Shown one piece after another: positions 1 to 64,000 of a stretch of DNA of 64,000 nucleotides (position 1 is the stretch's first letter; each line of letters begins with the position of its first letter). Under the pieces are notes generated by a model, which was not told where the DNA came from, made no database searches, and worked only from the letters and a program-made list of their open reading frames with translations. A program made the translations under genes and the position numbers. The stretch lies in sequence record ON568341.1; one strand, given 5' to 3'.

Positions 1-138
1 AGTACTGTAGTACTGTTGGACACTGGAAAGGTCGCCAATGATAAAGCGATTGCAGGTATATTAACGGATCTTGAGCCTGGTAGCAGTGCACCAATAACGT
101 TAAATGGTAAAGTGTTTAATATTTTACTCACTGATTAA
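1..138 (+). CDS. 3' end of a hypothetical protein, truncated by the window
   Basis: Frame 1 is open (STVVLLDTGK...LLTD*) to TAA at 136-138 and is followed by a terminator. Confidence 0.6.
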   Translation, partial: STVVLLDTGKVANDKAIAGILTDLEPGSSAPITLNGKVFNILLTD

Positions 139-144
139 GTACAT

Positions 145-166
145 AGCCCACCTGGTGGGCTTTTTT
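145..166 (+). terminator. Rho-independent terminator
   Basis: AGCCCAC-ctg-GTGGGCT stem followed by a T-run. Confidence 0.85.
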
Positions 167-371
167 GTTTTTGTAGTATCGTAGTACTGAGATACTTTGA
201 AAATAGTTTTAAGAAAGTAGTTGACATTACCGCAGAAAAGCGTAGAATGTATTACATCAAGACGGGGAGCACTAAGTAGACCGCCAGTAAGTCGAACGAA
301 AAACTGGACACGTCGAGAAAACTTTGATACACTAATAAACGTAAACTAAACTTTAATTGAGGATTTATAAA

Positions 372-854
372 ATGGCTAATGTAAAATCATTTCTGAAAGC
401 ACTGATTTCTAACGACACTGCTATTGCGGCTGAATTGCTGGCGGATCTGGATAGCGATACCATGAAAGCAGTACGCAACAATTTTAACATTGCGTACAGT
501 GAAGCTAAAGAACTGCAAGCCAAAAAGATAGCAGAACTGGAAGAACAGAAAAAAGCCCGTGAAGAAGAACTACAAGCAACGATTGAAAGTATTCAGGCGG
601 CGGTTGCAGGGTTGGATCTGGAAGTAGTTATTGAAATGGCACATAAAGCACTGGCAGTTAAGTACGGGGAAGATAAGCCAGTAACTAAACCTAAAAAATG
701 GATTCAGGAACGCGTAACGGTTGTTCTTGATAATGGCGAGGAACATTTAATTCCCGTGCGTGGTAACTGCATTGCGGTAGTTCTGGATGCTATCAAAGAA
801 AGCGGATTGACTCGCGAGGAATGGATCGAAGCTCACCGCAAAATTGAAGCATAA
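372..854 (+). CDS. H-NS/StpA-like protein with a divergent DNA-binding motif
   Basis: N-terminal coiled coil. The C-terminal VLDNGEEHLIPVRGNCIAVVLDAIKESGLTREEWI aligns without gaps to the E. coli H-NS segment [35 protein letters not shown] (recalled from memory). SD GAGG precedes ATG 372. Confidence 0.6.
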   Translation: MANVKSFLKALISNDTAIAAELLADLDSDTMKAVRNNFNIAYSEAKELQAKKIAELEEQKKAREEELQATIESIQAAVAGLDLEVVIEMAHKALAVKYGEDKPVTKPKKWIQERVTVVLDNGEEHLIPVRGNCIAVVLDAIKESGLTREEWIEAHRKIEA

Positions 855-875
855 CAATTAAAGTACTGAATCACT

Positions 876-902
876 AGCCCACTTCTTATAGTGGGCTTTT
901 TT
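876..902 (+). terminator. Rho-independent terminator
   Basis: AGCCCACT...AGTGGGCT followed by a T-run. Confidence 0.85.
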
Positions 903-1129
903 GTGTTTATCGTTTACCAGTCCACTAGCACCGCCTAGAATCGATTCTAACGCATTAAACTGATTATCTGATGAATAGCCCTAGCTGGTGGCGTTAATGC
1001 CGTTAGAAAGCGATTGAGGACGTTTAAAGTATTTTGCAAAAAGTAATAAAAAGTACTTGCACGATTAAGAGATTAGAGTATAATTAATTACATCAAGACA
1101 AGACACCTTAACTAACTGAGGATATAAAG

Positions 1130-1282
1130 ATGAATACTTATGAACTGGATTGTTTCACTTTACAAGTAATGTCAGTATGCAGTAAAAAAGATTGGTCATC
1201 AAAGGAATTTAAAGCAGTTATTGCGTGTGCAAAACACGGCAAGACTATCAATGAAACGGCATCAATCATTGATAAACTTTAA
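1130..1282 (+). CDS. Hypothetical protein (50 aa, not in the ORF track)
   Basis: Promoter at 1057, SD GAGGA, MNTYELDCF...IDKL*. Confidence 0.7.
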   Translation: MNTYELDCFTLQVMSVCSKKDWSSKEFKAVIACAKHGKTINETASIIDKL

Positions 1283-1354
1283 AAAATAGTTTGACAATAG
1301 TTTTAAGTACTGCGATAATACATACATCAACTACTGAATAGGAATAAAAAAACA

Positions 1355-1582
1355 ATGGCTATCATCATTACTTACGTATCTGGTACTACTGGCACTGCTT
1401 CAACTGTTGCTGTAATTACTAATAAGAAAGGAGCGGAATTACATTTTGCAATGGATAATTGGGCCGTGAAGGAGTTCGGACCGTGGGCAAGTGTAGCATA
1501 CATTGAAACCTATCAAGTGCCATCGATTAGCTTAACTGATTTAGGTGTAGATCGAATCTTATGCCTGGATGAATTAATTTAA
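1355..1582 (+). CDS. Hypothetical protein
   Basis: Own promoter and SD. Confidence 0.75.
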   Translation: MAIIITYVSGTTGTASTVAVITNKKGAELHFAMDNWAVKEFGPWASVAYIETYQVPSISLTDLGVDRILCLDELI

Positions 1583-1668
1583 AAAAGTACTTGCAAAGTA
1601 AATCGAATAAAGTATAATACATTACATCAAGGGGAGAAAATGGTTCTCCCCACTAAGAGGAAACTAAT

Positions 1669-1812
1669 ATGAAAACTTGTCAATGTGGTAAAAAATCTAT
1701 TACTGGTTTGAAACGGGGCGTTGCACTTTGCCAGTACCATTATAATTTACAAGTATGGGGTAAAGAATGGGCCGATCAAGTGGAAGCAATTAAGAAAGCA
1801 AAAAGTAAGTAA
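1669..1812 (+). CDS. Small Cys/His-rich protein, possible Zn ribbon (47 aa)
   Basis: Promoter, hairpin leader and SD GAGG; CQC...CQYH. Confidence 0.7.
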   Translation: MKTCQCGKKSITGLKRGVALCQYHYNLQVWGKEWADQVEAIKKAKSK

Positions 1813-1893
1813 AAATATTATCACAGTACTATTGACATAGATTGATAGTACTGGCATAATAGATTTTATCAAGACAACTAAGAGGAAATTAAA

Positions 1894-2238
1894 ATGGCTA
1901 ACATCAATACTATAGCAGCACAAAATATTAACCTGTCTTCTGTTGAAGTTGTACACATTGCCGCCCGGCGTTGGTTCCAGGCGTCTTATGGTAATACTTA
2001 TTTCTCTTTAACGGTAGATGTTGAAATCAATGGCGAATTTATTGAAGTAGTAAACGTGCCGTTCCAATATGGCTACGGGGATCATTTTGACACTGTAGCA
2101 ATGGAAGAATTTAGCAAGGTTATTAATATGGAAGGTAAAGAGTTTTTACGCGGTTCTTATCTTTCCCGTTTTTGCCGTGATAATAATATTACTGTTTATA
2201 GTTCTGTTAGTGATGTTAAACGCAAAAAAGATCTTTAA
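1894..2238 (+). CDS. Hypothetical protein, paralogue of 7732-8055
   Basis: Shared GNTY.S, YGYG and DVKRKKD motifs. Confidence 0.8.
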   Translation: MANINTIAAQNINLSSVEVVHIAARRWFQASYGNTYFSLTVDVEINGEFIEVVNVPFQYGYGDHFDTVAMEEFSKVINMEGKEFLRGSYLSRFCRDNNITVYSSVSDVKRKKDL

Positions 2239-2318
2239 TTAGCTTTACTTTATGCAGATACTTTGATATAGTGTCTGCATAGGGGAAAGAAATTAAATCA
2301 ACTTAAGAGGATAGTAAA

Positions 2319-2588
2319 ATGAAAAATATCAGTACTTTAATCGATGCAGGCACACATGTTCGTCGGTCTATGGTTGCAACCAGTTCTACAAAACAAGTAG
2401 CGAGCGGTTATCTTGTATTTGTGCACGATGGAAAACTCCTGGAACGTTCAATCAATTTTGATGTTAAAAACAATTGCCGTTTTATTATCTTTAAGCGTGA
2501 GCAATATAAAATTGATTTACCAGCAAAGCCCATTAGTGGGGCGTACAACGTGCAATCATTGTTTGAGCGTCAACCATACACCTATTAA
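2319..2588 (+). CDS. Hypothetical protein
   Basis: Promoter at 2244, SD GAGGA. Confidence 0.75.
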   Translation: MKNISTLIDAGTHVRRSMVATSSTKQVASGYLVFVHDGKLLERSINFDVKNNCRFIIFKREQYKIDLPAKPISGAYNVQSLFERQPYTY

Positions 2589-2639
2589 TCAAAACAACGT
2601 TAGCGGTCGATTTAGGCCGCTTATACTGGGGATTATATA

Positions 2640-2810
2640 ATGAATACTAATCAAGTACTGAACGAGATTGAAAGCATCATTAAACCGATGAAGCGTACTG
2701 ATGCAATGTTAACACCGGAAGAATGCCGCTTATATGAGCGTTACAGCGTCGAACAAGTCCAGGCAATGGCCCGTATCCGTCCGGTTGCCAGTACTGATAA
2801 GGCGGCGTAA
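2640..2810 (+). CDS. Hypothetical protein (56 aa, not in the track)
   Basis: SD GGGGA, MNTNQVLNE...DKAA*. Confidence 0.6.
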   Translation: MNTNQVLNEIESIIKPMKRTDAMLTPEECRLYERYSVEQVQAMARIRPVASTDKAA

Positions 2811-2811
2811 T

Positions 2812-3021
2812 ATGCTTACTGTACAGGATAAGATCGACATCTTAAAGGTTAATATGTATGTGATTGATGCCGTACCTGGTAAAGTATTTGCATACGATGA
2901 CACCACTGTAAGCAATTTCTACTATAGCCAGGACGTGGGGGATCTTTCTGTACAGTCGGTTATTGAAAATGTAGTTAATGCAGCGTATGAGCATTTACTT
3001 TCAAATAGTACTTGCAATTAG
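2812..3021 (+). CDS. Hypothetical protein
   Basis: ATG immediately follows the upstream stop; start corrected from 2734. Confidence 0.65.
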   Translation: MLTVQDKIDILKVNMYVIDAVPGKVFAYDDTTVSNFYYSQDVGDLSVQSVIENVVNAAYEHLLSNSTCN

Positions 3022-3090
3022 TTTTCAGTACTGTATAATGTTTTACATGAAGGGGAGAAATAGTACTCCCCACTAATTAAGGAATATGAA

Positions 3091-3237
3091 ATGAAAGCAT
3101 CAAAAAAGAGTAATACTAAGAAAGCATGTTCACCTTTCGCTGGGGTATTCCCTTTACGTTTCGTTGATGAAGTGGTTTCCTACCCGCCGGGCCTTACTCC
3201 TGAGATGGTAGAAAGTTTGCGTAAATCTAAAAAATAA
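3091..3237 (+). CDS. Hypothetical basic protein (48 aa)
   Basis: Promoter at 3012, hairpin leader, SD AAGGA. Confidence 0.65.
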   Translation: MKASKKSNTKKACSPFAGVFPLRFVDEVVSYPPGLTPEMVESLRKSKK

Positions 3238-3318
3238 TACTTGCAATTAGTTTTTAGTACTGTATAATGTTTTACATGAAGGGGAGAAATGATTCTCCCC
3301 AAGAACAGGAGAAACAAA

Positions 3319-3471
3319 ATGAAACAATACAACGCTCGGTTTGATGTTACTATCGGCAACGGCAAAGGTCAATTCTCTTTCAGTACTCGTAAGAGTTATA
3401 CAGAAAACTTCTTGCGTAATTGTGCACTGACCGCCGCACAAATTAAACATTATTTTCAGGCTAAAAAATGA
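3319..3471 (+). CDS. Hypothetical protein
   Basis: Promoter at 3241, SD AGGAG; start corrected. Confidence 0.7.
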   Translation: MKQYNARFDVTIGNGKGQFSFSTRKSYTENFLRNCALTAAQIKHYFQAKK

Positions 3472-3557
3472 AATCATTAGCTTATTATAGTTCGGCCCTG
3501 GTCGGTGCATTGATCGCGGCATTGTTAGTAGCTTATCTATTCTTTATGGTGATTTAA

Positions 3558-3695
3558 ATGAATCCTAACGGTATAATTTACAGTACTCCTAAAACGAAAG
3601 CAGATAAAGCTAAAGCACGTAAAGCGAAAGTAAAGGAATACATCAAGCAAGGCATGACACGAAAGGCGGCGATTCTAAAAGCTAAAAATAAATGA
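3558..3695 (+). CDS. Very basic small protein (45 aa)
   Basis: MNPNGIIYSTPKTKADKAKARKAK...; SD GGTGA. Confidence 0.55.
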   Translation: MNPNGIIYSTPKTKADKAKARKAKVKEYIKQGMTRKAAILKAKNK

Positions 3696-3800
3696 AAAAA
3701 GTGGTTGACTTCGGTCAGCCATTTTGCTATTATATAATCATTGAGAGATAGCTCACTAGCCCACGGGGTGCGGGAGTGTATCTATTATATAAGCATTGAG
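3695..3800 (+). ncRNA. Terminator/promoter/small-RNA cassette, copy 1
   Basis: Hairpin containing TTGACT-17-TATTAT, then an ORF-less stem-loop with a TAGCCCACGGGGTGC core. Confidence 0.5.
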
Positions 3801-3916
3801 TACTGAAAACTATTTTAAAAGTATTTGCAGAAAGTACTTGCAAACTATCTCAATTGGCGTATAATGTTTTACATCGCAAGGGGAAACGGTTTCCCCTAGT
3901 AATAAGGAATAAAATC

Positions 3917-4258
3917 ATGACTATTGCAATTGTACAATCTAACTTTGAAAATGAAATCATCGCCCAAGCACTGCGTTTAAATGATGGTCGGGCCGAAATT
4001 AATTACGGTTTCAATTCAGGCGGTTGTGAAAAATATCAGTACTTTATAACTGCTGATGGCGGTGTCCTGGGTATTAATACAGTTATTGTAAACATTCAGA
4101 AAATTAATTTCAATGATCCAGACGATAGCCAGTTTTACATTATAGGCGTAGACGTGAACTATGAGGATGACTCACTAACTGATGATTACACTGGCGAGAA
4201 GTTAGAAAGTGCATACGGTGAAGATGATTATCAGTCAGTACCAGAAGATTTCGAATAA
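3917..4258 (+). CDS. Acidic hypothetical protein
   Basis: Promoter at 3838, SD AAGGA; start corrected. Confidence 0.75.
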   Translation: MTIAIVQSNFENEIIAQALRLNDGRAEINYGFNSGGCEKYQYFITADGGVLGINTVIVNIQKINFNDPDDSQFYIIGVDVNYEDDSLTDDYTGEKLESAYGEDDYQSVPEDFE

Positions 4259-4358
4259 TATTAAAAAATAGTTTGACAATAGATTATAGTACTGTATAAT
4301 AGTTTACATCAAGAAACGGGAAGTAACAGTACTTCCCTACTAACAGAGAGAAAACAAA

Positions 4359-4571
4359 ATGGCTGATATCCGCACTTTACTGAAAAATGCAAAACGAGTT
4401 TTATTTTCTGATCACGAACATTTAAACAAGGATATTACTGGCGTTCGGAATATCAAAGATGTAAAACGTGTTATGGGTATCTATTGCAATATGAAACGTG
4501 TTGGCACGTTCGGTAATAAATTTCTATACCAGGCGGGGGATTACAATTTTACACTGACTATCATTAACTAA
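4359..4571 (+). CDS. Hypothetical protein
   Basis: Own promoter, leader hairpin and SD. Confidence 0.75.
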   Translation: MADIRTLLKNAKRVLFSDHEHLNKDITGVRNIKDVKRVMGIYCNMKRVGTFGNKFLYQAGDYNFTLTIIN

Positions 4572-4653
4572 AAATATTATCACAGTACTATTGACATAGT
4601 TTGATAGTACTGGCATAATAGATTTTATCAACTACACTACTAAGGAATTAAAA

Positions 4654-4833
4654 ATGGCTATCATCGCAAAAACTGAAATCATCGGCCTGGATTCTATCAT
4701 CATGACGTTTGAAGATCAAAAAGGTATGTATGTAGTTTCCTATGGTGATTATGTTCGGGAGTATGAAACAGTAGACGAAGCCTTTGAAAGTTACATTCGC
4801 CAGGTGAATAAAGCATACGACGATTACCGCTAA
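4654..4833 (+). CDS. Hypothetical protein (59 aa, not in the track)
   Basis: Promoter at 4591, SD AAGGA. Confidence 0.7.
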   Translation: MAIIAKTEIIGLDSIIMTFEDQKGMYVVSYGDYVREYETVDEAFESYIRQVNKAYDDYR

Positions 4834-4946
4834 AATATATTACCAGTACTATTAAAGATATTGACAACGTTTGATAGTACTGGCATAATAAGTTTTATAA
4901 ACAGTAGTCAAATAGTAGTTAACTTAACAAAAGAGAGAGAAACAAA

Positions 4947-5090
4947 ATGATCGCACTGGATTCATTCATCGATGCAGTTCTGGCAAAAACTGGCGAGGAT
5001 CTGACCGCAGAACAATACGCAATGATCGAGCAATGCCAGCAAGACGGTAAATCGGTGAAAGATACTGTTAAGATTATCCGCAAGATGTAA
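4947..5090 (+). CDS. Hypothetical protein (47 aa, not in the track)
   Basis: Promoter at 4861, AG-rich SD, terminator downstream. Confidence 0.7.
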   Translation: MIALDSFIDAVLAKTGEDLTAEQYAMIEQCQQDGKSVKDTVKIIRKM

Positions 5091-5096
5091 GATTAT

Positions 5097-5125
5097 AAGC
5101 CCATTAGTTAACGCTGGTGGGCTTT
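5097..5125 (+). terminator. Terminator hairpin containing a Chi site
   Basis: AAGCCCA...TGGGCTT with GCTGGTGG at 5113. Confidence 0.7.
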
Positions 5126-5196
5126 AATCATTTACCCTATACAATGCCAGTACTAAACCGTTTATCTCATTAGAATGCATTACAGGACGTTTAACA

Positions 5197-5394
5197 ATGA
5201 TTAGCATGAAATCAGTACAAAAACAAATAGAAACATTATCAAAAATTAAACGTAAACAGTACTCATTAGAATATAATATCAATGGTAACTATCATCTAAT
5301 GAAAGAGAATAATTTTATCGTCATTGATGAATCATTGCAAATTATTAGTATAGTACTGAAAGCATTAATTAATGATAGAAAAAGGTTAAAATAA
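5197..5394 (+). CDS. Hypothetical protein
   Basis: SD AGGA; coupled to the next gene. Confidence 0.6.
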   Translation: MISMKSVQKQIETLSKIKRKQYSLEYNINGNYHLMKENNFIVIDESLQIISIVLKALINDRKRLK

Positions 5395-5651
5395 TGGCAG
5401 TAGGATTCGCGAAAGATGGAGCCGAGCAAGATGAGATTAACGCAGTTATTCAAGCCGCCGTTAACCACGCTAGAAAGCAAATTAACGCACAAATAGAATC
5501 ACTGATACATTGCCTCGACTGCGGCGATAAAATCCCTGAGAATCGCCGACAGGCTGTTAAGGGATGTAAGTACTGCATTAATTGCCAAGTGGATCATGAT
5601 AGTACTTTTAAAAGAGATCCGCGTAATTGTTGGCATAGATCTATGAGATAA
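5394..5651 (+). CDS. TraR/DksA-family C4 zinc-finger protein (YbiI-like)
   Basis: MAVGFAKDGAEQDEI N-terminus and CLDCGDKIPENRRQAVKGCKYCINCQ zinc finger. Confidence 0.9.
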   Translation: MAVGFAKDGAEQDEINAVIQAAVNHARKQINAQIESLIHCLDCGDKIPENRRQAVKGCKYCINCQVDHDSTFKRDPRNCWHRSMR

Positions 5652-5715
5652 AAAGTAATTGACAGTACTGAAAGATAGTGTATAATGTTTTATATCTTAA
5701 CTGAGGATAGAAATC

Positions 5716-6072
5716 ATGGGAATACAACATATCACGCGGACCACTGACAATGGCGAGATCACTGGTTATCAAGTACAGGGCAAAGTAGCACAATTGCAGT
5801 ACTGGTTTGTTAAACGTGGAATCATTGCACCGGATCTTGATTATGACCGTGTAGCGTTTATTGATTCTCTTTATGTTGATCCTGATAGTCGGGGCAATGG
5901 TGAAGGTAACGAATTAATGAATGCCTTTATCGATGCCGCCGATGATTCAGATTGTATCATCTTAGAATGCGATACGGGAGAAGATAACGCCTTTAATCTT
6001 AAAGAATGGTACGAAGGATTCGGATTCGAGGTACTGATCGATAGTGAATATCCTATCATGATTTTATCATAG
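5716..6072 (+). CDS. GNAT-family acetyltransferase
   Basis: IDSLYVDPDSRGNGEGNELM (motif A) and WYEGFGF (motif B). Confidence 0.85.
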   Translation: MGIQHITRTTDNGEITGYQVQGKVAQLQYWFVKRGIIAPDLDYDRVAFIDSLYVDPDSRGNGEGNELMNAFIDAADDSDCIILECDTGEDNAFNLKEWYEGFGFEVLIDSEYPIMILS

Positions 6073-6150
6073 TACTTGCATTTAGTTTTCAGTACTGTTA
6101 TAGTACTTGCATCAAGGGGAAACATCTTCCCCTACTAAGAGGAAATAAAA

Positions 6151-6339
6151 ATGGAAAACTTATCAAGTATTTTAGTACAAGATGATTTCGGTAATCCTGG
6201 AAGTGCTATCATTGTTCGGGGCAATAAAGCAACGTTTGTTATTGCTGGTGGACCCGTACAGCGTAGCATTAAAAATAATGCTGTTACCATTAATAATGTA
6301 CGCTATCGCTTAGATAAAGAATTAATTCATAAACTGTAA
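6151..6339 (+). CDS. Hypothetical protein
   Basis: Own promoter, hairpin and SD. Confidence 0.75.
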   Translation: MENLSSILVQDDFGNPGSAIIVRGNKATFVIAGGPVQRSIKNNAVTINNVRYRLDKELIHKL

Positions 6340-6424
6340 AAAAGTACTGGACAATAGATTATAGTACTGTATAATAGTTTACATGAAGGGGAGAAATGAT
6401 TCTCCCCACTAAGAGGAAAGAAAA

Positions 6425-6637
6425 ATGCAAGGTCAACTAATCGTTCGTAAATGGTCTGATACTAACGAAAAACCGTGGGATGTACAATACATCGCCCCAA
6501 ATGGTGAATCCAGATATCAACCAGGTGTAACGCATAGTACTGAGCAATTCGCCGCCGCTCATCGCGAACGTCTGTTACAATCAATGCAGCACGGTTCCGG
6601 TGAAAAATTCATTCAGGATCATTGGCTGAAAGATTAA
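6425..6637 (+). CDS. Hypothetical protein
   Basis: Own promoter, hairpin and SD. Confidence 0.75.
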   Translation: MQGQLIVRKWSDTNEKPWDVQYIAPNGESRYQPGVTHSTEQFAAAHRERLLQSMQHGSGEKFIQDHWLKD

Positions 6638-6723
6638 AAAGTACTTGCACAGTACTGAATAAAGTGTATAATGTTTTATATCGGAAGGGGAATAGTTCCC
6701 CTCCTAACAAAGAGGAAAGTATA

Positions 6724-6897
6724 ATGGTCCAGGTAGAATTAACAGTACTGAAAGATCTGTTTTATCGGATTGGTACTACTGGCGAATATCCGAAGGGTGA
6801 TAATGCAAAACTTTACGTATCACTCGACTTATGGCAACGCGAACAATTAGCAACGGCCTGGCGTAAAGGCAAAGCAGATAGCGAGGTGAAAGCATGA
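6724..6897 (+). CDS. Hypothetical protein
   Basis: Promoter at 6645, SD GAGGA; start corrected. Confidence 0.7.
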   Translation: MVQVELTVLKDLFYRIGTTGEYPKGDNAKLYVSLDLWQREQLATAWRKGKADSEVKA

Positions 6898-7043
6898 AAG
6901 AATTCTTATTTGAAGTAGTGTTTCAAGGTGTCGGTAATAACCAACTGATTCGAACAAGTGGTTATAATGTTAACCAGGCATGGAATAACATTAAACAAAT
7001 GTACCCGAACGCTATCACATATCGCAACCCGAAAGAAGTTTAA
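6894..7043 (+). CDS. Hypothetical protein (49 aa, not in the track)
   Basis: ATGA overlap, SD GAGGTG. Confidence 0.65.
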   Translation: MKEFLFEVVFQGVGNNQLIRTSGYNVNQAWNNIKQMYPNAITYRNPKEV

Positions 7044-7052
7044 AAATAATTG

Positions 7053-7155
7053 AAAAAGGGATTGACTCCGGTCAGTCCCTTTGCTATTATATACGCATAG
7101 AAACAAATTAGCCCACCGGGTGCATAAATGTATCTATTGTTTGCTGGTGGCTAGT
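7053..7155 (+). ncRNA. Terminator/promoter/small-RNA cassette, copy 2 (with Chi)
   Basis: AAAGGGATTGAC-TCCG-GTCAGTCCCTTT, TAGCCCACCGGGTGC core, Chi at 7143. Confidence 0.5.
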
Positions 7156-7368
7156 ACTATCAAGTACTGAAAACTATTTTTAAAAAAGTACTTGCAAAGT
7201 ATCACGATAAGCGTATAATGTTTTACATCAGGACGGGGAACGAAATAAGTAACCCCGTTAAGTAGTCCAGGAGTAAGACATACGAAAAACTCCCCTGATA
7301 AAATAGTTTGACAATAGAAAGTAAACGAGTATAATACTTACATCAACCACTGATAAGGAAACATTAAA

Positions 7369-7644
7369 ATGCGGACTTTACTTACAGCTAACGAAATCGA
7401 GCAAGTACTGACTACTAATCTGGAACAATGGAAACGTGAAGCAGATATCCAGGCGGTTCAATGCCTTAACGATAAGTTAACGCCAGATGACTTAAGCACG
7501 ATTGTTGATCCACAATTTTATGAAGATATTCACGACACGTCTTTAAGCGTCGAGGATGTACTTGATAAGCACTACATTGATACTGATTTACATGTTTACG
7601 GTCGTAAAAACTTTATCACTATTCACGACATTTACAATACTTAA
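7369..7644 (+). CDS. Hypothetical protein
   Basis: Promoter at 7308, SD AAGGA. Confidence 0.75.
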   Translation: MRTLLTANEIEQVLTTNLEQWKREADIQAVQCLNDKLTPDDLSTIVDPQFYEDIHDTSLSVEDVLDKHYIDTDLHVYGRKNFITIHDIYNT

Positions 7645-7731
7645 GTATTGACAAAGTATCTTAGTACTGTATAATAGTTTACATCAAGCGAGGGGAATGG
7701 TTCCCCTCCTAACAAAGAGAGAGAAATAAAA

Positions 7732-8055
7732 ATGGCTATGATCCTTACCCAGAAAGTAGAACTGAAAATTGTAACCTCCTTTGACATTAAAGTTAATCGG
7801 TGGACTGATAGCCACGGCAATACTTACCACTCCTGCTACGTGTCCGCATTGATTGGTGATCGCTGGGAAGACCTGGGACACGAAACCTTTACATACGGTT
7901 ACGGCACACAAGGCGAGTACACGGGTTTAGAAATCATTAAGGAAACTGTAATAGGTTTCAACCCGAAAGAGAAAGTACTACACAGAATTGAGAAAGAGAT
8001 CAACAAAGAAATTACAGTTCGCTACTACGATGTAAAACGTAAGAAAGACATGTAA
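7732..8055 (+). CDS. Hypothetical protein, paralogue of 1894-2238
   Basis: GNTYHS, YGYG and DVKRKKDM motifs. Confidence 0.8.
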   Translation: MAMILTQKVELKIVTSFDIKVNRWTDSHGNTYHSCYVSALIGDRWEDLGHETFTYGYGTQGEYTGLEIIKETVIGFNPKEKVLHRIEKEINKEITVRYYDVKRKKDM

Positions 8056-8150
8056 TAGAATCCATTTAAAGTACTATTTGACATTGCCCAGATAGTACTT
8101 TATAATAGACTCTAACTTGTAGTACTAACTCAACTAATAGGATGTATACC

Positions 8151-8546
8151 ATGATTACTAAATTCTACGCTACCCGTGAAGCTGCCCGTATTGTTGCACG
8201 CGAGGAAGGAGCAGCATTTAAAGACATGGGCAAAGATGCAACGAAAGGTCAACGCTGGGCCGTACAGTTCAAAGAAATCTCTGATATTGTGAATTCACCT
8301 GAGCCAGTACTGACAGCAGCAGAACTAAAACGAGCGGATATGCTGGCGGCAATACTTGACGCACAAGATGAGTTTATCGCTGACTCTGATATCAAAGTAC
8401 AGGTAAACCACACCGCATGGACTCACGCGGATCACCTGGCAAACCTTAAGCGTCCAAGTGAACTGATTCGCAACCAGAAAGAGATCCGACATGATCGTAA
8501 GGGTAATCGTGTAACAGTATACAGTAAACGCCGCCAGGTTATCTAA
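8151..8546 (+). CDS. Hypothetical protein
   Basis: Promoter at 8078, SD AGGA, terminator downstream. Confidence 0.75.
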   Translation: MITKFYATREAARIVAREEGAAFKDMGKDATKGQRWAVQFKEISDIVNSPEPVLTAAELKRADMLAAILDAQDEFIADSDIKVQVNHTAWTHADHLANLKRPSELIRNQKEIRHDRKGNRVTVYSKRRQVI

Positions 8547-8568
8547 TAACTTGCAGTACTAACAACAC

Positions 8569-8593
8569 GGCGGGATCAGTTCCCGCCTTTTTT
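8569..8593 (+). terminator. Rho-independent terminator
   Basis: GGCGGGA...TCCCGCC followed by T6. Confidence 0.85.
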
Positions 8594-8607
8594 ATAGGAC
8601 AAACAAA

Positions 8608-8862
8608 ATGATTAAGGTTCAACTATATAAAGATAACATCTTACGGGTACACTATAAAGCACCTCAGAGAATCATCACAAAGGCCGTACAGCTTGCTAAT
8701 GAGTTTATTAATGGTAACCTATTACCTAGGAAGTTAAGCAACGGAAAACTGCGTGTAATCGACGTGGACACTAACAACAGGATAGTAATCGAGAACACAG
8801 GAAAAATAAACCTATATGAACACCAACAATACAATAAGAAAATAAAACTAATATCACGTTGA
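8608..8862 (+). CDS. Hypothetical protein
   Basis: SD AGGA. Confidence 0.65.
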   Translation: MIKVQLYKDNILRVHYKAPQRIITKAVQLANEFINGNLLPRKLSNGKLRVIDVDTNNRIVIENTGKINLYEHQQYNKKIKLISR

Positions 8863-9194
8863 CAGTACTCAAATGTTTTAGTATTATGTACACATACCAA
8901 CACGGGAGAAACAAAATGAAATTATCTAAAATCGAAAAGAAAACTATTGATGAAGCAGTTAAGCACGGTTATACCTTTCGTAATGATTCACATTTTACCA
9001 ATTTTCAACAGGGGTATCGTACTATTAAAAAACTAATTGACAAAGGTTTATTAGTTGAAGTCAATAATGGGAACGGTATCGAGTATCAGCCAACCCAAGA
9101 CGCATTATCTTTAAAGAAATATAATATTATCTAATTGACAGTACTCAAATGTTTTAGTACTATATGTACATACCAACACGGGGGAAACAAAATG
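8859..9194 (+). repeat. Duplicated ~60-bp promoter/RBS cassette (8859-8918 and 9135-9194)
   Basis: TTGACAGTACTCAAATGTTTTAGTA...CATACCAACACGGG.GAAACAAAATGA in both copies. Confidence 0.9.
8916..9134 (+). CDS. Hypothetical protein
   Basis: Start corrected; the track start lies inside the promoter. Confidence 0.75.
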   Translation: MKLSKIEKKTIDEAVKHGYTFRNDSHFTNFQQGYRTIKKLIDKGLLVEVNNGNGIEYQPTQDALSLKKYNII

Positions 9195-9434
9195 ATTACT
9201 TTAGAAAAACGTATCAAAGAAACTACATCGCTGGTGGAACTGTTAACAGTACTCAAATGTAAAACAACACCATTTAGCACGCCGGACTTTATTAATATGG
9301 TTGATGTTAATGGTCGCTATCGTATCACGGTCGAACAAGGAGCGGCGAAAGTATTCAGTACTAAAAACACGAAGGAAGTGATCCACGCCGTTAATGTTAA
9401 AAAAGTAGTTGCCATTGATAGTAAAGTACTGTAA
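9192..9434 (+). CDS. Hypothetical protein
   Basis: Start corrected; the track start lies inside the promoter. Confidence 0.75.
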   Translation: MITLEKRIKETTSLVELLTVLKCKTTPFSTPDFINMVDVNGRYRITVEQGAAKVFSTKNTKEVIHAVNVKKVVAIDSKVL

Positions 9435-9465
9435 TATAGTTTCATTAACTCAAGGAGAACATGCA

Positions 9466-10050
9466 ATGCGTAATTATACTAAATTCATCCGTACACTGTC
9501 AGAAATGGAAACCAACAAAGAGATCCTTTCAGCTTGTCGGTTAGCTGGCCTGGAGATCATCGGTGCTGGTTCTTCCCGTATAGTTTTCGCTTTAAATGAT
9601 CGGTTAGTGATTAAGGTCGCGAATTGTGATGCGGGTGTAGAACAAAATGAAACTGAATGTAAGGTATGGAATTTTTTAGACTATGACCGCCCTCAGTTGA
9701 AACAGTACTTTGCAAAGGTGCATATGCATTTATGCGATCCTGATAATATGTTTATCGTTATGGATCGGTTGAGTACTGCAAGCAAAGGTAGTGTGAAGCA
9801 CGTAAACGCGTGCAATGAATTAAAGTACAATATTAAACGTAATGCAATCGAACGCCATCACCGCTTTGCTGATGCACTACAACACGTCGATGATACATTA
9901 TCAACACTAACGATAAGAGATATCAGAAAACAGAATATCGGCCAGGATCGTAATGGCCTTATTAAAGTACTTGATTACGGTTTAACCTGCAATATCTGGA
10001 ATCAGTACTATAAAAAGCGTGATGTGGCAGCAAGTAAGGTAACACGATAA
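9466..10050 (+). CDS. Protein kinase-like (Ser/Thr kinase fold)
   Basis: Gly loop GAGSSR, VIK lysine, helix-C QNETE, catalytic loop RDIRKQNIG, DYG metal-binding motif; SD AAGGAG. Confidence 0.8.
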   Translation: MRNYTKFIRTLSEMETNKEILSACRLAGLEIIGAGSSRIVFALNDRLVIKVANCDAGVEQNETECKVWNFLDYDRPQLKQYFAKVHMHLCDPDNMFIVMDRLSTASKGSVKHVNACNELKYNIKRNAIERHHRFADALQHVDDTLSTLTIRDIRKQNIGQDRNGLIKVLDYGLTCNIWNQYYKKRDVAASKVTR

Positions 10051-10060
10051 AAAAGATTAA

Positions 10061-10165
10061 AAAAGGGATTGACTCCGGTCAGTCCCTTTGCTATTATATA
10101 TCCATTGAGAGATAACTCACTGACCCATAGGGTGCGGAAGTGTATCTATTATATAAGTATTCAGT
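10061..10165 (+). ncRNA. Terminator/promoter/small-RNA cassette, copy 3
   Basis: Same hairpin as copies 2 and 4; TGACCCATAGGGTGC core; body resembles copy 1. Confidence 0.5.
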
Positions 10166-10274
10166 ACTGAAAACTATTTTTAAAAAAGTACTTGCAAACT
10201 ATCTCAATGAGCGTATAATGTTTTATATCGAGAGGGGGAAATGGTTCTCCCTAGTACTAAAAGGAATCAAGACG

Positions 10275-10496
10275 ATGACTACTATGACCTGCGTTCACGC
10301 TTCAAATCTTCTGAATGATGCAGCATTTAAAGCAGGTGAAGAATATCAATGCTATCGGGATGAAAATAAAAAAGTTTTTGTAGTTGATAATAATGGTTTC
10401 CATATTGAATTACAATCCGGCTTCACTGGTTTAAATGGTAAATCAGTATGGGGCGTACAGGATGATAAAGGTACATATCATTTTAAACGTAATTAA
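10275..10496 (+). CDS. Hypothetical protein
   Basis: Promoter at 10192, SD AAGGA; start corrected. Confidence 0.75.
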   Translation: MTTMTCVHASNLLNDAAFKAGEEYQCYRDENKKVFVVDNNGFHIELQSGFTGLNGKSVWGVQDDKGTYHFKRN

Positions 10497-10577
10497 GTAT
10501 TGACAAAGTATATCAGTACTGTATAATAGTTTACATCAAGGGGAGAATGGTTCTCCCCACTAAAAGGAAACAAAATT

Positions 10578-10850
10578 ATGTCCAGCTACTCCGCTACTAT
10601 GATCATTAAAGATATGAACGGTAATCCTACTTCTGCTGGTGGATCATTTGGAAACATTAATTTAGATGGTCGGTTATCCATGCAATCAGCCATCGATGCA
10701 GCGAAAGAAGTTTTTAAGAATGAATGTACTGTTAGTAAGCTGGATTATATGGGTTTCGCTATCGAGAAAACTACTCGTTTTGTGAACTACAAAAATCCAC
10801 TGATGATTGATACTAACCTGAAAGCTAACGAAGTGGGGTACTTATTATGA
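10578..10850 (+). CDS. Hypothetical protein
   Basis: Own promoter, hairpin and SD. Confidence 0.75.
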   Translation: MSSYSATMIIKDMNGNPTSAGGSFGNINLDGRLSMQSAIDAAKEVFKNECTVSKLDYMGFAIEKTTRFVNYKNPLMIDTNLKANEVGYLL

Positions 10851-11038
10851 CAGTAGAAGAAGTAAAAAAAGTACTGGCAGTACTACGATATCATAATCAT
10901 TGCAAGGTGAAGAATGATCCTGATTATCTTGATTCATCCCTGGAGGAAGACACCTTGAACGCTATAAGCCATATGCAGACATTAGCAAAGCGTATGACTG
11001 AAAAGAACATGCCGGACTATATCGGAAATAAAATTTAA
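10847..11038 (+). CDS. Hypothetical protein
   Basis: ATGA overlap. Confidence 0.7.
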   Translation: MTVEEVKKVLAVLRYHNHCKVKNDPDYLDSSLEEDTLNAISHMQTLAKRMTEKNMPDYIGNKI

Positions 11039-11124
11039 AAAGTACTTGCATTGTAGTTAGATTAACGTATAATGTTTTATATCGAGAGGGGAAATGGTTT
11101 CCCCTCAAGTCCAGGAGATACACC

Positions 11125-11388: not shown

Positions 11389-11455
11389 TAACTAAAACAA
11401 AGTATAATGTTTTGCATAGGGGGAGATATCCTCCCCCACTAAAAGGAGTAATAAA

Positions 11456-11680: not shown

Positions 11681-11756
11681 AAGTTTTATTTCAGTACTAT
11701 TGACATAGCTTGATAGTACTGATGTAATAACTTTACTAACTACAAGGGGAAACATA

Positions 11757-57976: not shown

Positions 57977-58555
57977 ATGAATGTATTAGAATTAAGTACT
58001 AAGCTGATTAGTATGCGTAATGAGTGGTACGATTGGTTTTATAATGGTACTGATATGGATTTTTCAAAATATCCATTTATGGAATCAGGATGTGATGCAA
58101 GATACCGCTGGTTGAGCAAAGATTGTTCTGGTTTACATATTCTAGTTGACGATAGTGGTCAGGGAATTATAAAAGATTTACTTCAAGTTGAACAACTCGT
58201 CCATGATAATTGGTGTGATAACGATCCATACCTTGGAAATATGATTTATGTAAGTGAAGATGATTGCATATTCGTTATCCAGCGTCATGGTAATTCTATG
58301 TTTTATGTAGCAGATAGCAGTACTCCAGAAGGTGCAGCAGCCGATGGACTTATGCCTAAGATTGATATATTGGAATTTGGATTACCTGAGCACTTCCAGA
58401 TTAGTACTTTATACGATATTCCACCACTTGAGTTCTTTGAAGAATTTAAATTGTACTACAATGATCTTCAAAAATTGAGTACTGATCGACGCATTGAAAT
58501 AACTGTTAAGTACATGGACGGAACGAAATTAACTGATACGGGGATAGAATTTTGA
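57977..58555 (+). CDS. FQ-motif family protein (outlier)
   Basis: LPEHFQISTLYD. Confidence 0.75.
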   Translation: MNVLELSTKLISMRNEWYDWFYNGTDMDFSKYPFMESGCDARYRWLSKDCSGLHILVDDSGQGIIKDLLQVEQLVHDNWCDNDPYLGNMIYVSEDDCIFVIQRHGNSMFYVADSSTPEGAAADGLMPKIDILEFGLPEHFQISTLYDIPPLEFFEEFKLYYNDLQKLSTDRRIEITVKYMDGTKLTDTGIEF

Positions 58556-59241
58556 TTAAAGATTTAGATAGAATTTTATATGTACTAAGGGGTGTAATTA
58601 CATTACATCCACAAATCAATCGAATTGAAAGTACATTTCAGTTGGAGTCAAGAGAAACTCCATATTCACATATATCAAATGTAGTTGGTTCACTCAGTAC
58701 TGAAGACTCGTCTTACGATATTTGTGTATGTGAAGTACAACCAAGTTCGGATCTTGGATTTGCTATTTTTGATAAAGATCAAAATCTCATTAGTATGTTT
58801 CAGTGCAATAATCCTTTTTGGAAAACATGCCTGTATCCAGAGTGGGCTATGCTTGATCCAACCAAGAGTACCATTAAAGTTTATGACTCTAAAAATGATG
58901 AAGTCGTTATTGATTTGGATGAGTCAATGTCAGAGGAAGAACACTTTCAGCTAATGATGATGCGTGCTATGCCGGAATACAATGCAATGATTAACACTGT
59001 GCAATACATTAAGGATACCATGCCAGCGTTGCGTACACATGAGTTTTGTCATCCGGTATTGTATGAACATCTAGATTTAGACTTCAGTACTATTAAATTT
59101 AAAGATAGTGTTAAAAAATATATTCAAGAGAATGTTAAATTTGATTTTATTAGTACTATGAACAATAATCCAAAAACTAATTTTAGGCATCAGTACAATG
59201 AATCTTTGTCTAATGGACGTGATACCAGTTGGTGGAAATAA
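58552..59241 (+). CDS. FQ-motif family protein (outlier)
   Basis: SEEEHFQLMMM. Confidence 0.7.
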   Translation: MIKDLDRILYVLRGVITLHPQINRIESTFQLESRETPYSHISNVVGSLSTEDSSYDICVCEVQPSSDLGFAIFDKDQNLISMFQCNNPFWKTCLYPEWAMLDPTKSTIKVYDSKNDEVVIDLDESMSEEEHFQLMMMRAMPEYNAMINTVQYIKDTMPALRTHEFCHPVLYEHLDLDFSTIKFKDSVKKYIQENVKFDFISTMNNNPKTNFRHQYNESLSNGRDTSWWK

Positions 59242-61729: not shown

Positions 61730-61741
61730 CAAGGAGTAATA

Positions 61742-62674
61742 ATGCCAACTATCACCTTAACAATTGGGTTGCCTGGGTGTGGTAAAACTACATGGGCAGT
61801 GCAAGAGATTAAAAACGCCAAATCTAAGACTATCAACATCAACCGTGATGATATTCGTGAATCTATGGCGGGGTCACATGATGCTTACAAATTCAACGAT
61901 GCTAATGAGCAGTACGTAACTACTTTACAGTTCAGTGCAGCAAATTTAGCAGCAGAGAATGGTTGGAACATCATCATATCCGATACGAACCTTAAACAAC
62001 ATTTCCGTGATCTCTGGAAAGTATGGGCTAAAGATAATGATTATGATTACAAAGAAAAGAACTTCTATGATGATTTTGTACCTAATGAAGACCGTGGTGC
62101 AGATGTTCATGAATTCTTTAAGATTAAAGAGTTCGTAAAACTTTGTAAGAAATATAACCGCCAGCGTGAGCGTTCAGTACAAGATAATATCATTGATACG
62201 ATGGCAGATACTTACTATTATAGTAAAGCAATGCACATTGGTTACTATGGTAATTCAAGAGAAGCCTCTGTTATCGTTGATATCGACGGAACTCTTGCTC
62301 ATAAATGGGGTCGTAATCCTTACGATGAAAGTACTGTACTACAAGATACACCAGATGAAGAAGTTATTTTGTCTATTATCGCTGAAGCAGTTTTCCATAA
62401 ACGTAAGATTATTGTAATGAGTGGGCGTACTGAAGGGTGTCGTGCAGACACAGAACAGTGGCTTAAGAATTGGGGTGTTCCTTACGATGCATTGTTTATG
62501 CGAGGCATCGATGATAAACGACCCGATGATGTGGTAAAATATGAGTTGTATATGAATAACGTCGTGCATCATTACGATGTTAAAAAAGTATACGATGACA
62601 GATCACAAGTCGTATTCATGTGGCGTAAACTACTTGGATTAAAAGTGATGCAAGTTGCAGAAGGAAATTTCTGA
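61742..62674 (+). CDS. pseT: Polynucleotide 5'-kinase/3'-phosphatase
   Basis: P-loop GLPGCGKT, RDDIR, HAD motif DIDGT, SGR, RPD..VK and DDR. Confidence 0.95.
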   Translation: MPTITLTIGLPGCGKTTWAVQEIKNAKSKTININRDDIRESMAGSHDAYKFNDANEQYVTTLQFSAANLAAENGWNIIISDTNLKQHFRDLWKVWAKDNDYDYKEKNFYDDFVPNEDRGADVHEFFKIKEFVKLCKKYNRQRERSVQDNIIDTMADTYYYSKAMHIGYYGNSREASVIVDIDGTLAHKWGRNPYDESTVLQDTPDEEVILSIIAEAVFHKRKIIVMSGRTEGCRADTEQWLKNWGVPYDALFMRGIDDKRPDDVVKYELYMNNVVHHYDVKKVYDDRSQVVFMWRKLLGLKVMQVAEGNF

Positions 62675-62677
62675 CAC

Positions 62678-62705
62678 AAAAGGGATCAATGTATGATCCC
62701 TTTTT
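62678..62705 (+). terminator. Rho-independent terminator
   Basis: AAAAGGGATCA...TGATCCCTTTT. Confidence 0.8.
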
Positions 62706-62723
62706 CTTTTAAGGTATATTATA

Positions 62724-62900
62724 ATGAATGTAAAAACACAGATGTTATTACAAAAAGAATACTTAGAAAATATAGAAATGTTCTATAGATTGTCTTTATA
62801 CGAAAATAAACATAAAAAATATAACTTTTCTAAACAACTAACCACAAGTACTAATGATTATCTATTTTCATCAATGTTTTATGTGAGAGGTTTATTATAA
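62724..62900 (+). CDS. Hypothetical protein (58 aa, not in the track)
   Basis: SD AAGGT; TAATG overlap with the next gene. Confidence 0.55.
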   Translation: MNVKTQMLLQKEYLENIEMFYRLSLYENKHKKYNFSKQLTTSTNDYLFSSMFYVRGLL

Positions 62901-63157
62901 TGGATAAATTTCACACAGATATAACACAGATAGGTAATCTTATCAATAGTCTAATTACTGATTTAGAAGAAAAGTACTTAGGTCGAAATGTATACGTTGA
63001 AATGTATGAAACATATGGTGTTATTGATATGATTTATTACAGTGCATTGAAGTGTGAAATACGTTTAACAGTATGTTTGTTTGAAAAAGATACATTCAAC
63101 AGAAGTACTGCAATTCGTCAGGTTGGTGTAGATGACATTGAATTATATGAGGAATAA
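62900..63157 (+). CDS. Small helix plus beta-barrel-like protein
   Basis: EKYLGRNVYV. Confidence 0.7.
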   Translation: MDKFHTDITQIGNLINSLITDLEEKYLGRNVYVEMYETYGVIDMIYYSALKCEIRLTVCLFEKDTFNRSTAIRQVGVDDIELYEE

Positions 63158-63411
63158 TGATGTTTGAACAGGACGTAGAGCTATTCAAAAGACATATTGA
63201 ATATTTGACTGTTTTAGAGAATGATTTAACCACAAAATACAAAGGAATTAGAGTCCAGTGTTGGTATGATGACTGGGATTATAAAAGGGAACTTACTATT
63301 GACCGAATTTATTTCAGTGATGGTGTACTGAATGTACATGGTGTAAATGATTTTGGTCATTCATATACATATTCTAATAATGCTAAATTTAAAAGGATCT
63401 GCAATGAATGA
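63157..63411 (+). CDS. Small helix plus beta-barrel-like protein
   Basis: TKYKGIRVQC. Confidence 0.7.
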   Translation: MMFEQDVELFKRHIEYLTVLENDLTTKYKGIRVQCWYDDWDYKRELTIDRIYFSDGVLNVHGVNDFGHSYTYSNNAKFKRICNE

Positions 63412-63706
63412 ATATTATCATAATTTATTCGATTACATAAAACTAATAGATGATCTTTCTTTTGAATTTCTCAGTACTGAAAAAGTTGATGAACCTCTCT
63501 ATTATGATTGTATTAGTTCACTGTGTTTAGATGAAAAAGAGATATTAGCAAATAACTTACCATCCACGGTCTGTGTAATCAATGGTTCCAAGGCTGTGGT
63601 GTCTGAGGTTAATTTTCATAAATCACTTAATACAATTGTTTACAAGTTCGATAACACTTGGTTTAATCACGTAACTAGTAATATTAAATCTGTGAGATTT
63701 TTATGA
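63404..63706 (+). CDS. Hypothetical protein
   Basis: SD AAGGA; start corrected. Confidence 0.65.
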   Translation: MNEYYHNLFDYIKLIDDLSFEFLSTEKVDEPLYYDCISSLCLDEKEILANNLPSTVCVINGSKAVVSEVNFHKSLNTIVYKFDNTWFNHVTSNIKSVRFL

Positions 63707-63999
63707 ATATAAAAAAATTATTTGAACAAGTAAATTTATTGTACTTGTGTTCAGACGGCTCAGATAAGGAATATAGTGAAGTTTATTTAGAACTATTTAG
63801 AACTGAAATACATCTAATTCGAAGATACCTAATTGATAACAAAACTGAAGTAAAAGTTAGATACCATAATGGTACTTTAAAGAATGGTATAATTATTGGA
63901 TTGATAGTTACAAGAATGTCCAGTAATATTAAAGTTGCAGTAAGATTAATGACTGATGATGGTGTCTACACAATAGAAGCTAATGAGATTATATATTAA
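63703..63999 (+). CDS. Late small-protein family (divergent)
   Basis: LFEQVNLLY...ELFRTEIHLIRRYL. Confidence 0.65.
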   Translation: MNIKKLFEQVNLLYLCSDGSDKEYSEVYLELFRTEIHLIRRYLIDNKTEVKVRYHNGTLKNGIIIGLIVTRMSSNIKVAVRLMTDDGVYTIEANEIIY

Positions 64000-64000
64000 A

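Follow-up and report, generated by a model that had tools for sequence, protein, structure and literature searches.

Over-representation of the palindrome AGTACT in Escherichia phage UE-S1 and its relatives points to a possible, undescribed virus-encoded system that reads it

The stretch of DNA analyzed here (64,000 nucleotides, hereafter the window) corresponds to positions 124001-188000 of the genome record of Escherichia phage UE-S1, an Asteriusvirus (ON568341.1, 358,076 bp), and is internal to the 8,298-bp terminal repeats annotated at both ends of that record; the match was made through window positions 40000-64000, which are 100% identical to record positions 164000-188000. Of the 147 open reading frames (ORFs) called in the window, 144 lie on the + strand and nearly all are small and without assigned function; Pfam matches were to RnlA RNA ligase, polynucleotide kinase/phosphatase, a Dam-family methyltransferase, a DksA/TraR zinc finger, a GNAT acetyltransferase and a ParE-like domain. 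The DksA/TraR-type zinc finger, the GNAT acetyltransferase and the ParE-like toxin domain are encoded in an early region of small genes at the start of the window and likely serve host takeover. The subject of this report is the hexameric palindrome AGTACT, which pervades this DNA and is concentrated in the promoters of the early region. The main genome used for comparison was that of phage ECO103 4-12-1 (loci L003-L009), a 350-kb sequence that is 92% identical to the window.

AGTACT occurs 213 times in the window, compared with 16.3 ± 4.3 occurrences (largest 28) in 100 dinucleotide-preserving shuffles, and leads all hexamers in over-representation by a large distance (order-0 expectation 21.4, z = 41), the second-ranked palindrome reaching 2.4-fold at most. 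The excess suspected in an earlier, sequence-only reading of this DNA is confirmed and exceeds what was stated there, and its local counts (nine copies in 1-2000 and seven in 57990-59160) were exact. That reading had named beforehand, as an outcome that would speak against it, the loss of the excess under a null model that takes codons into account. The excess survives: the 145 coding copies compare with 41.5 ± 5.9 when synonymous codons were permuted within each gene, 70.0 ± 6.4 when this permutation also preserved codon-junction dinucleotides, and 20.6 ± 4.6 when codon order was permuted. All three reading frames are occupied by coding sites (62, 31 and 45). The dipeptides ST, VL and QY, correctly noted before as often building the site, are together with EY over-used 1.5-1.7-fold in the ORFs of the window, and 66 of the 116 ST dipeptides (57%, 13.5% expected) are spelled AGTACT. 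Selection on AGTACT extends to the protein level.

The same holds for the whole of ECO103, in which 918 copies were found where about 119 are expected; every 10-kb bin is enriched (12-67 copies versus 3.3 expected), and coding copies number 745 versus 213.8 under the codon-aware null (z = 53; next palindrome, z = 5.5). AGTACT is kept at about one copy per 400 bp, about ten times chance density. Barring one 8.3-kb gap, spacing in ECO103 is near-Poisson (coefficient of variation 1.10), so that the periodicity proposed earlier as a check is absent; there is no regular spacing, and the sole peak, at 20-22 bp, comes from promoters with two sites.

The recognized word is the hexamer AGTACT itself. 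Words one mismatch away are at expectation in the window, and lone AGTAC half-sites are at codon-aware expectation (ratios 0.83-1.2) outside an AGTACT-poor island that is described below. Because lone, oriented half-sites are not enriched there, selection outside the island acts on the whole palindrome, and T is strongly favored over A at position 6 (3.3-3.5-fold versus 1.1-1.2-fold over the null). The flanks carry little information, with a preference (H-AGTACT-D) for C and against G 5' of the site that is symmetric on both strands; it is symmetric in six lineages and independent of the coding strand, G preceding the site in 5-9% of cases compared with a background of 17-18%.

Comparison of UE-S1 with ECO103 indicated that the sites are conserved beyond their surroundings. 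Of the 200 aligned window sites, 179 (89.5%) are intact in ECO103, whereas random and composition-matched control hexamers in the same alignment are intact in 68.8% and 68.4% of cases, respectively. Codon position 3 is conserved at 95.7% within sites versus 86.4% outside (p = 5e-7), and noncoding positions at 97.6% versus 93.5%. Lack of conservation had been named as a refuting outcome, and the earlier claim that the enrichment implies selection finds support in this comparison, in the codon-aware nulls and in the recurrence of the enrichment in at least six lineages. Sites also turn over, 21 being private to UE-S1, 40 private to ECO103 and 179 common to both; AGTTCT is in excess among the alternative alleles, which reflects no more than a synonymous change of valine codons (GTA/GTT) in frame 2. 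In 15 orthologues shared with an Eneladusvirus (about 48% protein identity; 19 sites in UE-S1 and 25 in the Eneladusvirus), five sites occupy the same codon position (0.06 expected), and about 75-80% of sites are without positional conservation between the genera. Since conservation and turnover are both seen, the density is upheld by a mixture of long-lived and replaceable sites.

The early region carries a sigma-70-type promoter and a 5'-untranslated-region hairpin ahead of nearly every small gene in its 13.9 kb. Early promoter cores hold 26.4 AGTACT sites per kb, compared with 7.8 in other early noncoding DNA and 3.7 in early coding DNA; outside the early region the baseline is about 2.3-2.5 per kb for coding (2.5) and noncoding (2.3) DNA alike, and chance expectation is 0.33. 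From these regional densities it therefore follows that there are two layers, a uniform baseline blind to coding status and a roughly ten-fold promoter-specific excess. At least one AGTACT is present in the core of 20 of the 27 strong sigma-70-like matches on the + strand of this region, and four of the seven site-free matches are hairpin-embedded TTGACT...TATTAT elements that are probably not real promoters. In agreement with the sequence-only reading, which had AGTACT abutting the -35 and -10 elements of early promoters, the + strand of the window holds 12 copies of AGTACTTGCA and 15 of AGTACT-N1-2-NATAAT.

Across the 20 promoters, the sites fall into five discrete registers (-7/-8, -17/-18, -27, -30/-31 and -39) and reuse consensus bases. 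In register -27 (AGTAC-TTGCAA, six promoters) the final T of the site doubles as the first T of the -35 hexamer, as in the promoter at 1586; in registers -17/-18 (TTGAC-AGTACT, four promoters) the last A of the -35 doubles as the first A of the site, as in the promoter at 5659. Registers -7/-8 (AGTACT-G-TATAAT or AGTACT-GN-NATAAT) account for twelve promoters, and in the -8 register the T of the site plus G makes the TGn of an extended -10. Finally, three promoters have a site one base upstream of the -35. AGTACT thus overlaps consensus bases without being, at any one fixed position, a core sigma-70 element in its own right, and lies as occluding operators do, inside the polymerase footprint of a co-regulated set of promoters (20 of 27). 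Matching architectures are found in the Eneladusvirus locus. No link was found between AGTACT and the promoter motifs described in relatives, whether middle (TGAAACG) or late (TATAAATA) (PMC5259590).

Upstream of most small ORFs in 1-13 kb the promoter is accompanied by a GGGGAG...CTCCCC hairpin. In addition, a 28-nt hairpin with a perfect 12-bp stem (AAAGGGATTGACTCCGGTCAGTCCCTTT or a variant), followed by GCTATTATAT, is present in four copies and may serve as regulatory RNA, terminator or attenuator. Metagenomic material from relatives consisted of assembled contigs only; compared with window positions 1-6000, contigs from the runs X1, X15, X16 and X18 skip or reorder early cassettes, and their joints adjoin promoter AGTACT sites (e.g., 1312>4287, 1853>3026, 1297>3255 and 1618>1824). 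These joints are suggestive of, and consistent with, cassette shuffling through recombination between the repeated promoters. Positions of these and other features are given in Table 1.

Table 1. Features discussed in the text. Positions refer to the window unless another record or locus is named.
Feature	Position	Strand	Description
Early small-gene region	1-13900	+	Repeated cassettes of sigma-70-type promoter and 5'-untranslated-region hairpin
AGTAC-TTGCAA promoter	1586-1618	+	Site 1586-1591; -35 1591-1596; -10 TATAAT 1613-1618
Two-site promoter	1825-1860	+	Site 1825-1830 before -35 (1832-1837); site 1847-1852 before -10 CATAAT (1855-1860)
AGTACT-G-TATAAT promoter	4273-4300	+	-35 TTGACA 4273-4278; site 4288-4293 in spacer; -10 4295-4300
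TTGAC-AGTACT promoter	5659-5686	+	-35 5659-5664; site 5664-5669; -10 5681-5686
28-nt hairpin, four copies	3698-3725, 7055-7082, 10062-10089, 12321-12348		TTGACT/TATTAT pair inside, without AGTACT
AGTACT-poor island	20400-27900	+	4 AGTACT (at edges), 35 sense AGTACA, 0 TGTACT
Tandem paralogous genes spanning right border of island	27543-28624 and onward		Repeats at 27723, 28089 and 28448
Chi GCTGGTGG	984, 5113, 6244, 7143, 9230, 10635, 12213, 12436, 59587	+
Chi GCTGGTGG	50952	-
Dam-family (PF05869) N6-adenine methyltransferase	51699-52220	+	Only recognizable sequence-specific DNA enzyme of the window
Dam-family gene pair	51699-52750; L010:14888-15985; fENko-Kae01 record 40162-40689
C5-cytosine methyltransferase UES1_076	UE-S1 record 50728-52608 (L018:1-1881)		626 amino acids
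Array of 13 paralogous genes in ECO103	L009:27418-45200	+	Adjoins the early region; about 380 amino acids each, RCC1-like beta-propeller repeats

The island, which the sequence-only reading had overlooked, is the largest AGTACT gap of the genome. Its sense strand is rich in AGTACA instead (order-0 expectation 2.6 in UE-S1), which occurs in all three frames and in noncoding DNA over about 20 small, non-paralogous ORFs; the top 8-mer is CAGTACAG. The island genes of ECO103 contain 45 AGTACA compared with 16.5 ± 3.5 under the codon-aware null, and no other block of this kind exists in its 350 kb. Island genes are confined to Asteriusviruses. In fEgEco12, which belongs to a second Asteriusvirus clade and whose island proteins are about 55% identical, the corresponding 8 kb hold no AGTACT, no GTACT and 42 AGTACA, with sharp borders (4-7 AGTACT per kb on either side), and 13 AGTACA positions are common to both clades (0.2 expected). 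Thus, selection within the island acts against the palindrome and in favor of a one-base, strand-specific variant. The absence of AGTACT together with the excess of AGTACA implies that the sixth base, and hence the symmetry, is functionally read. The polarity of the variant is strict: in the UE-S1 island AGTAC occurs 39 times in sense and five times in antisense orientation, four of the latter at the edges, and in that of fEgEco12 the antisense form is absent. This polarity implies that something strand-specific is at work. A symmetric mark is therefore shown by the island to be an incomplete account, and no single model offered here covers both the symmetry reading and the strand specificity. 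Neither terminal inverted repeats nor a mobile-element signature was found around the island. Its right border is spanned by tandem paralogous genes in which one and the same position reads AAGTACAT at 27781 and 28147, near the island, and AAGTACTC at 28509, in the outermost copy, so that the two dialects switch across the border.

Examination of other phages showed that the trait tracks phage phylogeny and not host taxonomy. AGTACT is enriched in Asterius-, Eneladus-, Alcyoneus- and Mimasvirus, including two Xanthomonas phages; observed and expected counts were 164 and 13.7 in pEa_SNUABM_50 (Eneladusvirus, Erwinia), 79 and 13.9 in K64-1 (Alcyoneusvirus, Klebsiella), 39 and 8.1 in fENko-Kae01 (Klebsiella), 66 and 10.3 in XbC2 (Mimasvirus, Xanthomonas), and 73 and 8.4 in XaC1 (Xanthomonas). 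Significance under the codon-aware null was reached in all five enriched lineages too, and enrichment goes together with a major capsid protein that shares at least about 78% identity with its K64-1 counterpart. There is no enrichment in the Vibrio, Pseudomonas and Agrobacterium relatives 2.275.O (5 observed, 10.2 expected), PA5oct (0 and 14.1) and Atu_ph07 (3 and 8.3), in the Xanthomonas jumbo phage Xoo-sp13 (6 and 9.3), or in the T4-like coliphage TH58 (6 and 16.6); depletion was seen only in PA5oct and, weakly, in TH58. In the 41 kb around the PA5oct capsid gene (locus L013), where the codon-aware null predicts 9.2 copies, no palindrome is more strongly depleted than AGTACT, the reverse of the situation in the enriched clade. 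An apparent CTGCAG excess raised the possibility that PA5oct has an iterated palindrome of its own; this was rejected, the excess being gone under the codon-aware null.

The enrichment also runs counter to the avoidance that restriction imposes on palindromes, as had been argued from the sequence. In ECO103, GCGC is absent (about 296 copies expected) and 23 palindromic hexamers have zero copies in 350 kb, among them GGTACC, CGTACG, CTGCAG, CCATGG, GAGCTC, GCATGC, CTCGAG, AGGCCT, AGCGCT, GGATCC and GTCGAC. EcoRI and EcoRV sites are not avoided in this genome, and CACGTG and GTGCAC are mildly enriched. The avoidance pattern is common to the enterobacterial relatives examined (L010, L011 and L012) and is different in PA5oct. 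What AGTACT shares with restriction-site avoidance in phages (PMC6286503) is selection on short palindromes, acting on 23 hexamers and GCGC here; its sign is opposite, the ScaI/Eco255I site being enriched 8- to 12-fold in the clade.

A strict, symmetric hexamer, a clade-specific distribution and the promoter registers lead us to favor, at somewhat less than even confidence, a phage-encoded reader of double-stranded DNA, strict in specificity and two-fold symmetric, which would gate the early promoters and mark the genome. The argument for phage encoding is that the trait follows phage phylogeny over Enterobacterales and Xanthomonas hosts and is missing in TH58. Such a putative reader might be a protein that binds as a dimer, or else an enzyme of restriction-modification type. 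At early promoters served by host (sigma-70) RNA polymerase, its occupancy of AGTACT, or the modification of the site, would gate polymerase access as an early-gene switch or shut-off, and the roughly 900 evenly spread sites would label the phage chromosome as its own. The 8-kb operon-like block would escape the symmetric reader by excluding the palindrome and carrying the strand-specific AGTACA instead. It is possible, though less than probable, that these elements together make up an undescribed phage word-reading system in which AGTACT gates promoters and marks the chromosome and the AGTACA dialect marks the escaping 8-kb operon.

Several observations weigh against such a reader. About 75-80% of the sites are intragenic, where an operator has no obvious job, and the island of fEgEco12, with AGTAC 47 times in sense and never in antisense orientation, is unexplained by a symmetric reader. 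The early region, where sites are dense, lies in the interior of the genome, over 100 kb away from the annotated terminal repeats; since these sit at the record ends, the idea that the early region is the first DNA to enter the cell was discarded. Finally, no helix-turn-helix, ribbon-helix-helix or ScaI-type domain was among the Pfam matches listed for 445 ORFs (the 147 of the window and 298 of a relative), which is weak evidence because most proteins matched no family. The hunt for the reader yielded, among these matches, only a Dam-family methyltransferase, a C5-methyltransferase, TnsA-like and HNH domains and a weak RE_endonuc match. A 'transcriptional regulator' annotated in fEgEco12 upstream of the polynucleotide kinase gene was considered as the reader and set aside for want of Pfam support.

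The Dam-family enzyme is listed as a candidate only, as nothing ties it to AGTACT. Its gene is followed by one that Pfam does not recognize and whose annotation is cytidylyl-, nucleotidyl- or phosphopantetheine adenylyl-transferase; this synteny is conserved across genera, and the pair might form a DNA-modification module. An intein that contains Hint and LAGLIDADG homing-endonuclease domains splits the C5-methyltransferase UES1_076 downstream of about residue 77, and an ECO103 ORF of the intein-free size class (450 amino acids or fewer) that bears a C5-methylase domain is probably its orthologue. These genes bear on the explanation that AGTACT is the epigenetic target of a phage methyltransferase or hypermodifying enzyme, whose mark would protect or label the DNA and whose methylation state, parental or newly replicated, would switch the early promoters; AGTACA would then be modifiable on one strand only. 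Sites over the -35 and -10 elements resemble Dam-controlled promoters, all-or-none hexamer specificity is typical of restriction-modification enzymes, and Elhai reportedly linked HIP1, an iterated palindrome of cyanobacteria, to cognate methyltransferases in 2015. The phages encode the two methyltransferases, yet neither has a known AGTACT specificity, the Dam family being very widespread and either GATC-specific or non-specific. Viral methyltransferases specific for AGTACT do exist, for example in mollivirus (PMC7253447); against this, bisulfite analysis of RaK2 indicated CpG methylation only (PMC3622015). Since modification alone does not account for a ten-fold enrichment either, we regard this explanation as unlikely.

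A polar signal resembling Chi, with a helicase-nuclease or translocase of the phage recognizing oriented AGTAC(W) on a single strand, would let the palindrome work both ways and the island in one direction, its density sparing phage DNA while host DNA, poor in sites, is degraded, or stimulating recombination-dependent replication. Island polarity (47 to 0 in fEgEco12 and 39 to 5 in UE-S1), equal coding and noncoding densities and near-Poisson spacing all agree with such a signal, and bacterial Chi sequences are likewise strict, short and clade-specific. Host Chi itself (GCTGGTGG) accumulates in the window, with nine copies on the + strand and one on the - strand (0.21 expected per strand); eight lie in one orientation in the first 12.5 kb, and ECO103 has 28 in total (about 1.5 expected). 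The contigs that join early cassettes beside promoter sites could also be read as recombination at such a signal, although homology of the repeated promoters explains these joints equally. What makes a Chi-like signal improbable is that lone oriented half-sites are not enriched outside the island and that the ten-fold excess and fixed registers in promoter cores are left unexplained.

Neutral drive, that is, biased mismatch repair or gene conversion (of the very-short-patch type that has been proposed for HIP1) turning near-cognate words into functionless AGTACT during recombination, would account for the presence of the word everywhere, its Poisson-like spacing, its turnover between UE-S1 and ECO103 and the many sites not conserved in position between genera. 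It is nevertheless very improbable. One-mismatch neighbors are not depleted (conversion of very-short-patch type from one specific neighbor was rejected on the finding that these words are at expectation), and in promoter cores the sites are three to ten times as dense as in other noncoding DNA and use discrete registers. Moreover, a genome-wide drive would not spare an 8-kb island that has zero sites and another enriched word in two clades. No Vsr-type domain was among the Pfam matches listed for the 445 ORFs.

That the selected word is instead AGUACW in transcripts, self-pairing or read by an RNA-binding protein or nuclease with the DNA palindrome incidental, seems most unlikely. Sense-strand AGTACW does occur throughout, in the island on the sense strand only, and nearly all genes of the window lie on one strand; however, only palindromy explains the preference for T over A at position 6 outside the island, the flanks are symmetric whatever the strand of the gene, and density peaks in promoter cores over the -35 and -10 elements. 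A host protein as reader is barely credible. The binding sequence of the nucleoid-occlusion factor SlmA, GTGAGTACTCAC, contains AGTACT, most of the enriched phages infect Enterobacterales, and the Pseudomonas relative lacks sites. SlmA and host factors in general were rejected on flanks and host distribution: no flank combination is rarer than GAGTACTC, the SlmA core (4 of the 918 sites in ECO103), the G...C flanks of GTGAGTACTCAC are not those found, G being disfavored 5' of the site in all six lineages, two Xanthomonas phages are enriched while the Vibrio relative is not, and the coliphage TH58 is depleted. A by-product of codon, dipeptide or dinucleotide usage can be dismissed, for although the codons AGT, ACT, GTA and TAC are in frequent use and tRNAs for Ser and Thr are among the phage genes (PMC12805682), the count is 3.5- to 7-fold over synonymous-permuted and codon-order nulls, the excess spans three frames and noncoding DNA and is missing from relatives of similar composition, and such an artefact is ruled out by three codon-aware nulls and palindrome-wide scans in nine genomes or loci.

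The phage-encoded reader favored here has partial counterparts. The closest known phenomenon is HIP1 (GCGATCGC) of cyanobacteria (PMC5861425), which like AGTACT is a short, strict palindrome that exceeds composition-based and codon-aware nulls many-fold, occurs genome-wide both within and outside coding DNA, with roughly one copy for each gene, is extra-conserved and is lineage-restricted. Unlike HIP1, AGTACT is a hexamer of phage genomes, is concentrated in promoter cores and has a strand-specific variant in one block. Chi, KOPS and DNA uptake sequences are also strict, short, lineage-specific words over-represented in coding DNA; through their density, Chi-type words allow a DNA-processing machine to distinguish its own DNA from that of others, and the island polarity is Chi-like, whereas the unit outside the island is a palindrome and Chi offers no parallel to the promoter association. 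TF1 of Bacillus phage SPO1 and the stoperators of mycobacteriophage L5 involve phage DNA-binding proteins with many sites in their own genome and down-regulation of early promoters used by host polymerase. TF1 recognizes hydroxymethyluracil DNA and no hexamer, and the L5 stoperators, of which a genome has about 30, mostly intergenic, are asymmetric and 13 bp long; the AGTACT sites, as putative binding sites, number about 900 and are mostly intragenic. The early cassettes resemble the PeSL cassettes of T4-type phages, reportedly described by Arbiol et al. in 2010 as modules of early promoter and stem-loop, in that a repeated promoter and stem-loop flank small ORFs in a plastic region, the evidence for shuffling here being suggestive only. 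To our knowledge PeSLs have not been described as carrying an embedded iterated palindrome; the one found here runs through the remainder of the genome as well.

The searchable literature yielded no report of phages enriched in AGTACT; to judge from it, this is the first phage case of a HIP1-type iterated palindrome, with a promoter layer and a second dialect in addition. Identification of the reader would make it a small, genetically tractable model for HIP-type palindromes, which have been unexplained in cyanobacteria for more than 25 years. AGTACT density serves as a one-line classifier of the clade and, within its genomes, as a marker of native versus recently acquired DNA. If the pattern reflects such a system, a major clade of jumbo phages with 350-kb genomes, several of them therapy candidates, spends codon and amino-acid freedom on one hexamer, which would imply an abundant or essential, so far unnamed, reader protein. 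If that reader proves to be a new regulatory or self-recognition system, the finding may exceed a variant of HIP1, and a regulatory and self-recognition code spread across about 900 codon-compatible positions would have no known viral counterpart. Discovery of the reader would open the unexplored temporal regulation of Rak2-like jumbo phages and could explain how a phage without a nucleus-like shell discriminates its own DNA from that of the host.

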